Shown: piece after piece, positions 3,702-48,200 of the stretch
How positions within the stretch are numbered: position 1 is the first letter of the stretch
Layout of the letters: each line of letters begins with the position of its first letter
DNA from: Paragordius varius
Taxonomy: Eukaryota; Animalia; Nematomorpha
DNA length: 64,000 nt
Assembly: GCA_964247055.1 (NCBI GenBank)
Contig: OZ176050.1
Coordinates: forward strand, 1,984,001-2,048,000
Direction: 5' to 3'
Made by a program: the position numbers and the translations under genes
The notes under the pieces: model-generated
The model's database searches: none
Seen by the model: only the letters and a program-made list of their open reading frames with translations
What the model was told of the DNA's origin: nothing

Positions 3702-6700
3702 ATGGCATTCATCAAACGCTTATTAAATTTTTCAAATAATTTTGAATCCAAAAAGAAGAAAACTGACATATATCAATTCTTAAACAAAGAAAACGATCCG
3801 GAACAAGTATGGGAAATTGTTAAAGAACTTGGAGACGGCGCCTATGGAAAAGTTTATAAGGTACCTTTACTTTTTATTCAAGGCCCAAAATAAACAAAAT
3901 TCCCAATTATGGGCTGCTGCTAAAATTGCAGATATTCATAATGAAGAAGAATTGGAAGATTTTTCAGTCGAGTTAGCAGTATTGCATGAATGTAAACATA
4001 AAAACATTGTCGGTCTTCACGAAGCATTTTATTTTAAACAAAAATTATGGGTATATTTATTACTTAAATACGTGTTAGATCTTGATTGAATTTTGTGAAA
4101 TCGGTGCAATTGATAACATTATGCTGGAATTAGAAAAACCCTTGAATGAGCCCCAAATAAAATATGTTTGCAATGAATTATGTCAAGCGTTGGACTTTTT
4201 ACATCGAAATAAAATTATTCATAGGGATGTGAAAGCAGGAAATGTGCTGATAACCAAATCTGGTAATGTCAAATTGGCAGATTTTGGTGTCTCAGCCAGG
4301 AACACTCACACGCTACAAAAAAGGGATTCTTTTATTGGGACACCATATTGGTAATTTAACCTAAATTTGTTAACCTTTGATTTGACATTTCAAAATTATA
4401 ATTTTGTAAATTAGGATGGCGCCTGAAGTCATGCTTTGTGAGGCAATAAAAGATAATCCCTACGATTATAAAGCCGATGTGTGGAGTTTGGGTAAATTGT
4501 TTTATTTCACATATAATTTATCGTATATTAAATATCCATTTGCTTTAAGAATAATCAAATTTTAAAATTTTGGTACTATTAAAGGAATTACTTTGATCGA
4601 ATTTGCCCAAATGGAACCACCCAACCACGAAATGAATCCAATGCGCGTACTTATTCGTATTCAAAAATCGGAGCCACCCATGTTAAATTGTCCCAGCAAA
4701 TGGTAACACATTCACAATATATTTGCCGAATTATATATTTTTGATACAAATCATTTATTTAAAATTCATTTTGTTAACTAATATTTTTTATAATGGCATA
4801 GGAATAAATTATTGTTTGTGAGAAAGTTATAAATTTGAACAAAGGGAAATTATATTCTTCAACTAAAACCGTCACATTTTTTTACAAATTGTAACTTACA
4901 AACCTGTTACTCAATATTAACTTGAAATTAATTTTTTTAAATATTTACAGGAGCAAAGAATTTAGCTTGTTTATTGCCAGATGTTTGATTAAAGATCCTA
5001 GTCAAAGAGCCTCCATTCAAGATTTATATCAAGTAACTTTTATTTTAAATATATAAAATCCCCTAAAATGCATGCATTAAACATCAACATAAATTTATTA
5101 TATAAATAAATTTCAGCACAAGTTTTTGTTGGACGCCTCTGATCCCAAGCCATTATTGGATTTAATTGCAGAGTTTCAAGCGGAAATCAGTGAAATTGTT
5201 GAAGAAATCAATATACCTGAAGGGGCCGAAAATACTGAAGTACCAAATGTCCTACTTTTTATTATTAACTATATGGTTCAACTTTTTGTGTGTGTTCGTT
5301 TACAATATAAGTTTTTTATGCTCCAGACTAATACTAGTTAAAAAATATCTGAATTTAAAACTATGAAATTTATTGTAAAATTCATATGACTATGTTTAAT
5401 AAATATTTATGTTTCCGAAATTTTTAGGGAACAACAGATGACAATCTTTCCAACGATGAATCACACACTCCCTCTTTGCTGGACGATGAAAAAGGTATAA
5501 CTTCTAATAAAAATTTACCATAAATTTCATAACCACATATGTCATAATATAGTTTTAGAAGAGCAAACACCTCGTAAGCCCAAAAAAGCAGAAGCCCCCA
5601 GAATCAAGGATTTAGTATCTGTTGCCAAAACAACTCTTATTGCGGCTAAACCGACGACTGCCCTCACCACAACTCCAACCCTAACAAATAACCAAGTCGA
5701 AGATGCTAAAGGAGAAACAATCAAATCTCCTATTATTGTCAGTCATCGAGGGGAAACTACATGTATTTCATTTGGGGGGAAAGGTGTTACTACAGAACAA
5801 GAGCTTACTTTACAAAGTAATATGCATTCAGAAGCTATTGCCAACAACGCATGTAGCATAGTTTCTAATACGGACATCAACAACCACCTAAATGGTGATG
5901 ACATCCCCGAAGAATTATCTTTTTACGGTAAACGGCAATCCCTACAAATTGGAGGTACACGATTAGTTCCTTCCTTTCAAACATCTACCATATCGCAAAA
6001 TATATCACCAAAGGTAACATCATTAGATGCGCAGGAAGATGTTAAAATGCGCCGCATATCATCAAATGATAAAAATCCGTCGCAACAAATCACAAGTAAT
6101 GGATTGACTTGTGATACAATTAATAATCCAAATTTTTTACATTCATCTATCCCGTTAACTGCAGCTTCCTCCACAATTTCCTCGAAATCATCTAATGGGT
6201 CCTCTTTTTCTTATAGTTCTTATCATGGAAAAAACGATTCTTTTGCACCTATTCAAGGGGAAAGTTTATTAACAAATGAAAATGATCCCGTTTCTCAACA
6301 GGTGAATGAAGGTGCCAATAAAGTAATAGTGACTTTATCTGAAAAGGAATCGGAAAATAATAACAAAGTTTCCTCCAAAGTTAGTAGTGAGAGCCGATTG
6401 AGTTATCCATTTTTACGACACATGGGACATAAGTTTTTGTTTAATGGTTTACATAGCTCCCCTGTAGAGAAATTAGCACAACACGAAAATGGTGTAGCGC
6501 CAGACAATCATAATACTAATGCAAACTATTCTCCAACACCCACATTCAACAGTTTGGAGTTTGAAGCGAAATGTGGTATTCACACATTCGAAAATAATAA
6601 TGATGATTCCAAACCTTCTGCCCCCCCTTCCGAACAACAAACGATGGATTTGTTACCTAAAAGTCGACCGAAATCCTCGTTTTCCCTGTACAGTTTTGGG

Positions 6701-45232: not shown

Positions 45233-48200
45233 ATGGACTGGTCATTTTCTGGCTGCGGTTTCTTAGGTGTATACCATGTTGGAGTTGCCAGTTGCTTAAA
45301 AGAATATGCCCCTCATTTAGTAAACCGAATATATGGGGCATCTGGGGGGGCTTTAGCTGGTTGCTGTTTAATATGTGATTGCTGTTTAGGTAATTTTATC
45401 TTAATATTATTTTACAGGTGAAGCTATCTGTAACTTGTTAACAATTGTAGCTAAAGCAAGGTCCCGTAGTCTGGGTCCCTTACATCCAAGCTTTAATATA
45501 ACAAAAATTTTAAGGAATGGCCTAAATTCCGTATTACCTCCAAACGCTCATCAAATTGCATCAGGTCGACTTTTTGTCTCGTTGACACGAGTATCAGACT
45601 CAAAAAATGTTATCGTCTCTCAATTCGACACAAAAGAGGATTTAATACAAGTATTTTTTGGCTTTTAATTGTCTAGGTCCTTATATGCAGTTCATTTATT
45701 CCAATGTACTGTGGAATAATTCCTCCGACCTATAAAGGAACGGTAAATTTTTACTTGAATTTTTTTGGATTTTATGCGCGTTTTAATTAACATTGACACA
45801 CCTCCAACTGCAACATAATTAAAAAACATATTTTTCTTGTTTTTGTTTACATAACCATACTCTCATTAATGTTTTATAAAATATGTTAAATTCCATTCAT
45901 ATTTTGATTTATGATAATTTTTATTTGCTTAACAAAATAGTAATTATTCAAGTATTTCAAGATTAATATATTTGTTTAATTTATATACTTTAATGTATCC
46001 ACATCCACCTTTAAGTTTATTATCCTTTATTGATTGTCTTTGTGTCTATTAAAACACAAGTGTCCACAATCGAAATTAAATGATAACAAAAATATAAAAT
46101 GATAGGGAAACAGTAAGGTGTTTTGTCGTTAAAAAATGATAATATCTATCAGGTTATTATAGATTATCGTTGTAAAATTTTCTGTTTTTAAATAAAAACA
46201 CTATTAATACATAAAAATTACGAAGTGGACCCCCCCCCACATAATGATCTCTATTAAAATATTAATGGTTCAATATCCGCTACATGCCCCTCTCTTGATA
46301 TTAAATAAATTAATTTATTTTCAATTAATATTTATTTTTTCTAATCTAATTCTATTTGACAACAAATGATAATATAATTAAATTTTAATTGTTCCAGTTC
46401 ATTTTTAGCGCTTTATTCCATAAGTTAAAGTTTATTAGCTCCGAAAATTGCATGGTATCAAAATGAGCTACTCACTGTTTAGGCGCTTTATCTAGAAAGA
46501 ATATCTTTTATGAGAGCGGACTTTACAAGGGGTCCAATTAAATTTTTACAAACGATTTTAATATGTATAGAGGTACCTTGATGGCGGCATTTCTGATAAC
46601 CAACCAATCTTTGACGAAAACACAATAACTATTTCGCCCTTTTCCGGCGAAACCGACATCTGTCCTACCGACCATTCTAATAGCTTTTTAAGCTTTGAAA
46701 TTACCAACACAAACGTCCAAATAAATACCAAGTAAACGTTTTTTTCGTTTTGCTCAACTGTCCAAATAAAATACAGTAAAAAGTTAAATTAAAAATAACT
46801 AATAAGAAAAAGTTAAAAGCTAATTTGTTATGGGAAAACAATATTGAATTTCAATATTTTCTATAAAATTTAAATTAGAATCACACAAACTGCCACTTGT
46901 TTATATCTCTAATCTTTACTTTGCAACTCAAACCGATAGGTTATTTTGGAAGGCACATAAATGGTTTACTACAATAAAAAAAAATTTTCTTTATGGTTTC
47001 CTCTTTATAATTTTCCTTTGTGATATAATTTTTTAGCAATATTCATCGACTTTTATGTGCCTTGTTTCCCCCATCGGCCGAAACTTTGAGCGATATGTGT
47101 AAACAAGGGTTTGAGGACACCCTCAGGTTTTTGCAGCGGAAAAGTTTGATTGCTTGTACACGATGCATGAGCCTTAAAACCGATATGAAAATGGTTGGGG
47201 CAGGTGAGGAGAATGGAGCAGATGGTCGCAAATCGTCTCTCAGCACTTCAAGTGTTGTAAAAATGAGAAGGTCCCCTATTTCGCCTCACCATCGATCTTC
47301 GCTCAGAAAAAGTTTGATTAATAACAGCATACAAATAAATACCGCCGTTGCTGAACCAAATTTACCCATCAAAATTAATTATACAGAGGAGCTGTCGTCC
47401 TCTACAAATCAAGCATCAGCAAATAATATTCACGCTAAAAGACACGCAAACGGTAAATGCAGTCAATGTCGAAATCCGCTCTGTCTCATGACGGGTGAAA
47501 TATTGAAAACGGCATGTCATGAGAAAATTTCCGAAACATTAAAGTTGGAAGAAACTATTAAAGAAACTACTCTTCCGAGTAAAACTGCAAAACTTAAATC
47601 TGACTATTTCGAAGATTTTGAAAAGTATCGCAAATTACCGCCCGTAATCTCGGAAGCATTTAAAGCCGCTTGCAAAAAAATGGATCACGGTTTCATTAGT
47701 TTTTTGTTGCGGTTACCACCCCTTAAATTGTTTGCATATTATGTATACATTTGTCTCTTTCCAATAGACCTCTTTTTACACATCTCCTTGAGGTAAATTT
47801 TTATTTAATATAATACCGAAAAATTATAGTTGTTTAAAAGTTTTTTGAACTTAGATTTCTAGATTGGATTCCATATTTACCAGGTGATTTAGCTTGGATA
47901 TTTAGCCATTTTGTCCCTTTACTCCGGCTATTTTTGCGAAAAATGTGTGATCATAAATCTAAACGAGCAAGGTAAAATTTTTTCTATTCCTTTACATTTA
48001 CATCTTACTTTTCTTCCTCCTGTGGATATGTTGTTACACCATCCCTTTTGACCTAATAATATGGTTAATTATCGATTTTTTAAGAAAATCTTTTGTTGGT
48101 CTAGCTTATAGTCATCTATACATCTCTCAAGGACAATATAAACATTTAAAAATTAAAATAAAGTAAGTATAAGAAAATTAGATTTAATGTTCATGTATTA

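Follow-up and report, generated by a model that had tools for sequence, protein, structure and literature searches.

Tiny Introns in Animals and in the Present Window

Introns of the Bigelowiella nucleomorph measure 18-21 nt. Those of ciliates are of ~25 nt in Paramecium (PMC5014332) and of 15-16 nt in Stentor (PMC13644364). In animals, introns below 30 bp in length have been described in myxobolid Myxozoa, with a median of 27 bp in Henneguya salminicola and a value of 22 bp in Thelohanellus kitauei and Myxobolus rasmusseni (PMC13644364). A 2026 survey of 51 animal genomes found only Dicyema japonicum to be similar besides the myxobolids and predicted further cases, with no mention of nematomorphs (PMC13644364). 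The introns of D. japonicum have a mean of 38 bp, many being of ~26 bp, in a genome with 49% repeats and 36.7% G+C (PMC6736024, PMC13644364); tiny introns therefore do not require a repeat-free genome. Myxobolids and Dicyema both possess A residues of weak conservation upstream of the AG, and a conserved spliceosome has been documented alongside the tiny introns of these two groups and of Stentor (PMC13644364). The 64-kb stretch analysed here (contig OZ176050.1, positions 1,984,001-2,048,000 of the forward strand; "the window", in which positions are counted from the first letter) harbors 21 segments of 21-34 nt in six genes: SMC2, CLC, SLK, ATG5, ADAM, and PNPLA. These segments are very probably U2-type GT-AG spliceosomal introns of the ordinary kind, reduced to this size class in a lineage related to Gordionus.

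Like the myxobolids, the window points to a parasitic animal with an A+T-rich genome, mostly <30-nt GT-AG introns at conserved positions between conserved exons, GTa...AG signals, and possibly a weak preference for A just ahead of the 3' AG. Myxobolids, however, are Cnidaria, whereas the window would derive from an ecdysozoan related to Gordionus, and its tiny introns represent about half of those placed and lie in genes that also contain introns as long as 1.8 kb. Furthermore, Gordionus keeps introns of 37-87 nt at the same sites, which allows the shrinkage to be dated to the phylum or its vicinity. D. japonicum is likewise parasitic, a bilaterian whose tiny introns occupy conserved positions, but it is a spiralian in which nearly all introns are short, while the window displays two separate length classes and groups with Gordionus. 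Ciliates and nucleomorphs also exhibit canonical GT-AG introns far under the usual minimum together with a conserved spliceosome; in contrast to the animal sequence studied here, which has both classes, they are protists or remnants of organelles, their introns being nearly all tiny. The short SMC2 introns of Gordionus (37-55 nt class) share orthologous positions and phases, GT(A/T)...AG ends, and A+T-richness with those of the window. The Gordionus SMC2 introns measure at least 37 nt, as compared to 24-27 nt for the window orthologues, and the long ones are about ten times shorter in the window.

A preliminary description of the window had listed the groups known for tiny introns; that list left out the myxobolids (described in 2026). 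Minimal spliceosomal introns in parasitic animals are already known, and the lineage appears new. The word "intron" is absent from the Gordionus genome paper, and no link between Nematomorpha or hairworms and short introns was found in the papers searched, which name myxobolids and dicyemids as the only animals with <30-nt introns, a remark in Cunha et al. 2023 (Acutogordius/Nectonema genomes) being possible.

The 21 Tiny Introns

All 16 segments with coordinates in the preliminary description start with GT, end with AG, and measure 22-31 nt, the one in ADAM being on the minus strand. Its four ATG5 introns, for which only lengths had been given, were located on the minus strand as GT..AG segments of 21-23 nt. 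At all 20 of these gaps (21-31 nt), the flanking open frames join in a consistent phase. Two short introns have been added, both in CLC, at 14162-14211 (50 nt) and 14346-14379 (34 nt). Retention would cause a frameshift or a stop for 18 of the 21 tiny introns, and seven of the 21 lengths are divisible by three, equal to chance.

Exons were searched separately, and their landing positions in a profile or in a solved structure were compared between neighbours. Removal had been said to restore conserved protein sequence in six genes. Ten of the 21 tiny introns are anchored by a homologue or a profile: the four of SMC2, SLK 4051-4078, ATG5 intron 1, and CLC 14346-14379, 14464-14490, 15261-15288, and 15374-15399. 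The evidence consists of frame, phase, and motif order for SLK 3861-3882 and 8653-8682, CLC 14008-14032, 18006-18032, and 18629-18659, ADAM 38785-38813, ATG5 44801-44822 and 44502-44524, and both PNPLA introns. The 21-nt ATG5 segment is uncertain.

Two scans of the window were discarded. An initial GT..AG scan was uninformative, being swamped by in-frame GT..AG pairs within long exons. An unbiased scan for adjacent open frames bridged by 18-35 nt, with all end dinucleotides allowed, was too permissive: with 30-codon frames it returned 889 junctions against 350-420 in reversed-sequence controls, and A+T-rich dinucleotide pairs ranked top.

SMC2 and Its Gordionus Orthologue

SMC2 provides the most complete comparison. 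Its features are as follows.

25945-36244, plus strand: SMC2 (condensin subunit) gene, 21 exons and 20 GT-AG introns, from spliced alignment to Gordionus SMC2
26113-26139, plus strand: tiny intron (SMC2 intron 1), 27 nt, phase 0, in frame without stop; Gordionus counterpart of 37 nt
26290-26313, plus strand: tiny intron (SMC2 intron 2), 24 nt, phase 0; Gordionus counterpart of 41 nt
26476-26501, plus strand: tiny intron (SMC2 intron 3), 26 nt, phase 0; Gordionus counterpart of 87 nt
26751-26774, plus strand: tiny intron (SMC2 intron 4), 24 nt, phase 0; Gordionus counterpart of 44 nt
Within 26916-36133, plus strand: 16 longer SMC2 introns from spliced alignment, the first eight of 761, 1810, 469 (29857-30325), 175, 180, 138, 467, and 103 nt, the last eight of 514, 515, 380, 265, 71, 168, 67, and 408 nt

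Gordionus sp. m RMFG-2023, a horsehair worm (Nematomorpha), was the top match in a search with the SMC2 hinge exon. Its locus (L001:10001-86922) was retrieved, and the protein maps back to it exactly. The window model is the spliced alignment of this protein, with one junction corrected by hand (intron 29857-30325). Once the 20 introns are removed, the coding sequence is open over 1235 codons and ends with a TAA stop at 36242-36244.

The Gordionus gene spans 77 kb and possesses 21 introns, six of them short (annotated as 41-87 nt) and the others of 0.2-11 kb. All 20 introns of the window gene match Gordionus introns in position and phase. The window gene lacks the additional intron of Gordionus, which measures 46 nt and follows residue 188. 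As the orthologue fixes the intron positions, chance has no freedom there; at the window composition, the chance of meeting an exact GT at a given site is about one in 20, and the same applies to an exact AG. The 16 longer introns, too, have identical positions and phases in Gordionus, where their counterparts range from 55 nt to 11 kb. Introns total 6.6 kb in the window gene vs. 73.3 kb in Gordionus, an 11-fold shrinkage, and the lengths of homologous introns correlate (rho 0.69).

Matches to the Pfam SMC_N profile are contiguous over introns 1 and 2 (positions 1-53, 56-102, and 105-134). Opposite the nine residues of the in-frame 27-nt segment, a gap is observed in 86 of 120 homologues (N-terminal fragments from many organisms), and at the intron 1 site many of the remaining fragments read through their own intron.

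Three proposals of the aligner were rejected. Two in-frame "introns" of 15 and 54 nt represent insertions with respect to Gordionus, and the 1-nt exon proposed at 30180 is an artefact within the true intron 29857-30325. This same intron contains a G+C-rich stretch (30100-30190) with a tRNA T-arm-like sequence, GGTTCGAACCC, on one strand, possibly a SINE or tRNA remnant; ARAGORN called no tRNA there.

The GenBank model of Gordionus SMC2 (CAK9299371.1) places the donor of intron 1 27 nt too far upstream, resulting in a 64-nt intron (L001:10142-10205) and in the loss of nine conserved residues, VLGISNLSQ. The GT at L001:10169 defines a 37-nt intron and restores these residues, which are present in RefSeq XP_065318808.1.

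Relationship to Gordionus

A maximum-likelihood tree of SMC2, a phylogeny that the preliminary description had called for, pairs the window with Gordionus at 100/100 support, the two having a long stem in common and the window branch being about twice as long as that of Gordionus. Window SMC2 is 54% identical to the Gordionus protein and 36-40% identical to the ten others compared (three insects, one flatworm, five fungi, and one stramenopile). Gordionus SMC2 itself is ~38% identical to those of insects and flatworm. When exons 1 and 2 were read through the in-frame intron, the best protein match reached 71%.

Exon DNA of the window and of Gordionus is 72% identical over 575 nt, and G+C content is ~28% in the window vs. 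26.9% in Gordionus. A Fox gene of the window (see the last section) finds its best single-domain match in Gordionus, with an insertion in the forkhead domain common to both. Taken from its sequence, the lineage is probably Nematomorpha or very close to it: a fast-evolving relative of Gordionus, not Gordionus itself.

Tiny Introns of CLC, SLK, and ATG5

The CLC gene harbors seven tiny introns, four of them anchored on ClC-1 or ClC-2.

12405-19188, plus strand: ClC-1/ClC-2-type chloride channel gene; PDB matches to ClC-2 and ClC-1, Voltage_CLC domain; the exon model excludes 15505-17936
14008-14032, plus strand: tiny intron, 25 nt, phase 1; GT..AG, flanking frames of 69 and 49 codons
14162-14211, plus strand: intron, 50 nt, phase 1; exons reach ClC-2 residue 160 plus a split codon, then resume at 162
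14346-14379, plus strand: tiny intron, 34 nt, phase 0; between ClC-2 residues 205 and 206, GPF.. aligning from 206
14464-14490, plus strand: tiny intron, 27 nt, phase 0, in frame without stop; the ClC-2 alignment has a gap at the intron-encoded residues
14567-15134, plus strand: intron, 568 nt, phase 1; APIGG ends at ClC-2 258 and VLFGMEI begins at 259
15261-15288, plus strand: tiny intron, 28 nt, phase 1; ClC-1 anchors 286 and 356
15374-15399, plus strand: tiny intron, 26 nt, phase 2; ClC-1 anchors 286 and 356
18006-18032, plus strand: tiny intron, 27 nt, phase 1; ClC-2 motif comparison, open chain
18144-18301 and 18400-18512, plus strand: introns of 158 and 113 nt; GT-AG pairs that keep the chain open in ClC motif order
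18629-18659, plus strand: tiny intron, 31 nt, phase 2; GT..AG, frameshift if retained, in the open chain

Removal of 15261-15288 and 15374-15399 leaves 41 + 1 + 27 + 1 residues, which fill the distance between ClC-1 residues 286 and 356 exactly. The exon following 14008-14032 anchors at ClC-2 130-159, and the piece upstream of this intron (13860-14006) has no significant PDB match. Splicing of 18006-18032 gives ..MFVIG|SAFGRLFG.. (..IPCGTIIPMFVIG|SAFGRLFG..), which matches the ClC-2 stretch FMPVFVIGAAFGRLVG / FVIGAAFGRLVG. The chain 17936-18801 is open after taking out the introns of 27, 158, 113, and 31 nt. Pfam returned no match for the small CLC pieces.

The SLK gene shows the same mixture of tiny and longer introns.

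3702-9081, plus strand: SLK/STK10-like kinase gene; Pkinase matches, a long unique middle exon, and PKK domains, with a putative 3' end
3861-3882, plus strand: tiny intron, 22 nt, phase 0; flanking frames of 60 and 68 codons, frameshift if retained
4051-4078, plus strand: tiny intron, 28 nt, phase 0; Pkinase 21-73 and 75-163 contiguous across it
4351-4414, plus strand: intron, 64 nt, phase 2, placed by hand from kinase subdomain order and GT-AG ends
4492-4584 (93 nt), 4703-4950 (248 nt), 5033-5116 (84 nt), and 5495-5552 (58 nt), plus strand: introns placed by hand in the same way
8438-8508, plus strand: intron, 71 nt; PKK 15-57 and 61-107 across it
8653-8682, plus strand: tiny intron in the C-terminal coiled coil, 30 nt, phase 0; GT..AG, in-frame stop if retained

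The exon following 3861-3882 begins at Pkinase position 21. The exon before 8653-8682 ends at PKK position 107 of 139, and the next exon has no profile match. The 485-aa exon gave zero matches in the protein collection.

In ATG5, every intron placed is tiny.

44229-45135, minus strand: ATG5 gene, five exons if the 21-nt intron is real; ATG5_UblA, ATG5_HBR, and ATG5_UblB in order
44899-44920, minus strand: tiny intron (ATG5 intron 1), 22 nt, phase 2; UblA 1-71 and 73-97 on its two sides
44801-44822, minus strand: tiny intron (ATG5 intron 2), 22 nt, phase 0; GT..AG, UblA ends before it and HBR comes after it
44623-44643, minus strand: possible tiny intron (ATG5 intron 3), 21 nt, in frame without stop; uncertain, from a profile-length argument
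44502-44524, minus strand: tiny intron (ATG5 intron 4), 23 nt, phase 0; GT..AG, flanking frames of 92 and 91 codons, last exon with UblB 13-81

The argument for intron 3 is that the HBR domain, when read through, has 59 residues for 53 profile positions, and that dropping 44623-44643 removes seven of them.

Splice Signals

The ends are GT..AG in 21 of 21 tiny introns and in 25 of 25 longer ones. The other figures for the longer class cover 24 of the 25, the 158-nt CLC intron having been left out. The two classes compare as follows.

A+T content: tiny 81%, longer 77%, SMC2 coding sequence 64%
GTA at the 5' end: tiny 16/21, longer 20/24
GTT at the 5' end: tiny 5/21, longer 4/24
G at exon position -1: tiny 11/21, longer 17/24
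Pyrimidine fraction from -12 to -3: tiny 0.61, longer 0.64

In tiny introns, T or A predominates at positions +4 to +6, and the 3' end reads (T/A/C)AG. Their pyrimidine fraction of 0.61 is no higher than T-rich sequence predicts, and a distinct polypyrimidine tract is not observed. An A is found at -9 in 14 of the 21 (p = 0.002 before correction), which is suggestive only. None of the 46 5' ends carries the U12-type 5' splice site (A/G)TATCCTT, and no segment has the TA..TA ends of ciliate internal eliminated sequences (IES).

Intron Lengths and Gene Compactness

A total of 46 introns have been placed, in SMC2 (20), CLC (10), SLK (9), ATG5 (4), PNPLA (2), and ADAM (1). The tiny class accounts for 21 of them (21-34 nt, median 26, 19 being of 30 nt or less) and the longer class for 25 (50-1810 nt), with zero introns in the gap of 35-49 nt. 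Tiny introns are clustered: they are the first four of SMC2, all those of ATG5, and seven in CLC. They are thus common in the window, not universal.

That tiny introns share genes with much longer ones, as first described, is borne out. The further picture of a non-compact genome with kilobase-sized, transposon-filled introns is not. The window holds ~9-10 genes per 64 kb, SMC2 occupies 10.3 kb vs. 77 kb in Gordionus with every intron class shortened, and the longest placed intron measures 1810 nt. Open reading frames (ORFs) within the long introns have no transposon domain in Pfam, and the repeats identified are intergenic. The lineage looks streamlined relative to Gordionus, not non-compact. 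G+C content ranges over 25-34% per 2 kb across the window, with ~28% overall.

Origin of the Tiny Introns

The tiny class would consist of ordinary U2-type introns, in a lineage where all introns have been shortened, from the 37-87 nt of Gordionus to 24-27 nt and from kilobases to a few hundred bases. Tiny and long introns are found side by side within genes and bear identical weak signals, G|GTA(T/A) at the 5' side and (T)AG at the 3' side. One canonical spliceosome would therefore most likely remove both classes by intron definition; the branch point may lie in the A-rich spot located ~9 nt ahead of the 3' end, and ~12-20 nt only would be tolerated from the 5' splice site to the branch point. 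The preliminary description had favored a remodelled major spliceosome, with branch-point and polypyrimidine factors (SF1, U2AF) possibly lost or truncated and with U1 and U2 unable to occupy the intron together in the usual way. The 5' splice site, weak beyond GTA, and the missing polypyrimidine tract fit such a machinery, and a branch point near -9 would leave ~13 nt to the 5' splice site in a 22-nt intron. Against it, the long introns of the same genes bear identical signals, so that the same machinery must serve both. Myxozoans with 22-27-nt introns conserve the U2 snRNA, U2AF1, and U2AF2, and Stentor splices its 15-16-nt introns with a functional spliceosome (PMC13644364). The window itself bears no content on spliceosome genes: no snRNA, splicing-factor, or other RNA gene was found in its 64 kb (Rfam and ARAGORN for RNA). 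A loss or truncation of these factors is considered unlikely.

The introns might also be real and come from a source already described, a myxobolid or a dicyemid. Their median of 26 nt and their reduced GTa...AG signals match Henneguya (median 27) and Dicyema, the G+C content of Henneguya (29.1%, PMC13644364) is near that of the window, and Dicyema proteins may be missing from the databases searched. This origin is nevertheless very improbable, given the fully supported grouping with Gordionus in the SMC2 tree, an SMC2 identity of 54% with Gordionus vs. ~40% with insects and flatworm, the exon DNA similarity, and the shared Fox insertion. Furthermore, an SMC2 fragment of the myxobolid Thelohanellus is 68% identical to the window, no closer than other eukaryotes, vs. 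~76% for Gordionus over the same stretch, and Dicyema has 36.7% G+C vs. ~28%. Most segments shift the frame or carry stops, as assembly errors, sequencing errors, or pseudogene decay would produce; yet indel errors do not add 21-31 A+T-rich bases bearing splice signals, every segment is GT..AG within the narrow range of 21-34 nt, four are located exactly at orthologous intron positions, and SMC2 is open for 1235 codons after removal with no other defect, which makes artefacts or pseudogenes highly implausible. A germline-limited origin with programmed elimination, as for ciliate IES, is suggested by the 21-34 nt size and the A+T-richness, which resemble those of Paramecium IES. It can hardly be entertained for segments that end in GT..AG rather than TA..TA, coincide in position with conserved spliceosomal introns, and grade into longer GT-AG introns of the same genes.

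Some points weigh against the preferred reading, that of ordinary introns shrunk in a relative of Gordionus. For 11 of the 21 tiny introns, the case consists of an open frame, phase, and motif reading, and one of these (the 21-nt ATG5 segment), in frame without stop, could be coding. Excision from the mRNA is inferred from the DNA sequence, as is the position of the branch point. The A at -9 is statistically weak, its p value being uncorrected for about a dozen positions. The taxon is deduced from two genes, and the SMC2 tree contained no full-length protein from a nematode, priapulid, loriciferan, cnidarian, or dicyemid. The survey covered 64 kb, from which any genome-wide pattern would be extrapolated.

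Significance

The smallest size that spliceosomal introns can have shows what minimum of RNA must lie between the sites that the spliceosome recognizes. A case adjoining the horsehair worms would add an ecdysozoan lineage to the animals with <30-nt introns, and the Gordionus introns of 37-87 nt at the same positions would permit a comparative study of the step from ~40 to ~25 nt. Tentatively, and with a little less than even confidence, this can be proposed as the third independent animal origin of <30-nt spliceosomal introns, in an ecdysozoan close to or within Nematomorpha, the shrinkage being traceable stepwise.

Gene finders and read mappers commonly work with minimum-intron settings of ~20-40 nt. 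If the tiny introns are as described, such settings would break many genes in genomes that carry them, and the "rampant loss of universal genes" and low BUSCO scores of nematomorphs could be partly an annotation artefact. The 37-nt intron of Gordionus SMC2 was itself mis-modelled in one GenBank entry; where introns measure 21-31 nt, annotation is likely to be worse, with a bearing on published gene-loss claims for this group.

Partially Modelled Genes and Other Features

Two further genes with tiny introns have been modelled in part.

36295-39340, minus strand: ADAM10-like metalloprotease gene (partial model); Reprolysin_2/5, HEIGH motif at 37100-37384
38785-38813, minus strand: tiny intron in ADAM, 29 nt, phase 2; GT..AG, flanking frames of 175 and 59 codons, frameshift if retained
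45209-49133, plus strand: PNPLA2/ATGL-like patatin lipase gene (partial model); first exon with Patatin 2-46
45390-45417, plus strand: tiny intron in PNPLA, 28 nt, phase 1; GT..AG, flanking frames of 60 and 82 codons, frameshift if retained
45651-45676, plus strand: tiny intron in PNPLA, 26 nt, phase 0; GT..AG, frames of 82 and 37 codons

The two ADAM pieces flanking 38785-38813 gave no usable match in PDB searches, hence no homologue anchor, and none in Pfam. The PNPLA pieces at the tiny introns have no Pfam match; human ATGL is presumably contiguous across both introns.

The Fox gene is a single ORF at 40419-41141 (plus strand, 241 aa), FoxL1/FD2-like, with an insertion in the wing of the forkhead domain. 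A Gordionus Fox protein (P0002) carries a longer insertion at the same site. An exact look-up of the window ORF in the protein collection found no identical entry, and searches there returned no protein of the source species. The top match to this ORF, from duck, was set aside as a gene model with two forkhead domains and not a close relative.

An interspersed repeat of ~580 nt is present in five copies (2291-2869, 3046-3632, 23358-23911, 24120-24701, and 25045-25644), all intergenic and located upstream of SLK and of SMC2. Pfam gave no domain, and none that is transposon-like, for the ORFs of this repeat or for LINE-looking ORFs. Two ORFs at 10167-10858 (minus strand) give the impression of a hAT-transposase remnant, with an RRHYETTH-like motif and a C-terminal dimerisation-like end, and have no Pfam match. 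Tandem arrays are found at 50723-51623 (units of 62/169/403 nt) and at 56998-57541 (units of 93/186 nt), the latter within a minus-strand, proline-rich ORF of 391 codons (56590-57762) without any known domain. Two other minus-strand ORFs, 42054-42599 (182 codons) and 58017-59021 (335 codons), display no Pfam domain or identified homologue and may be lineage-specific genes.

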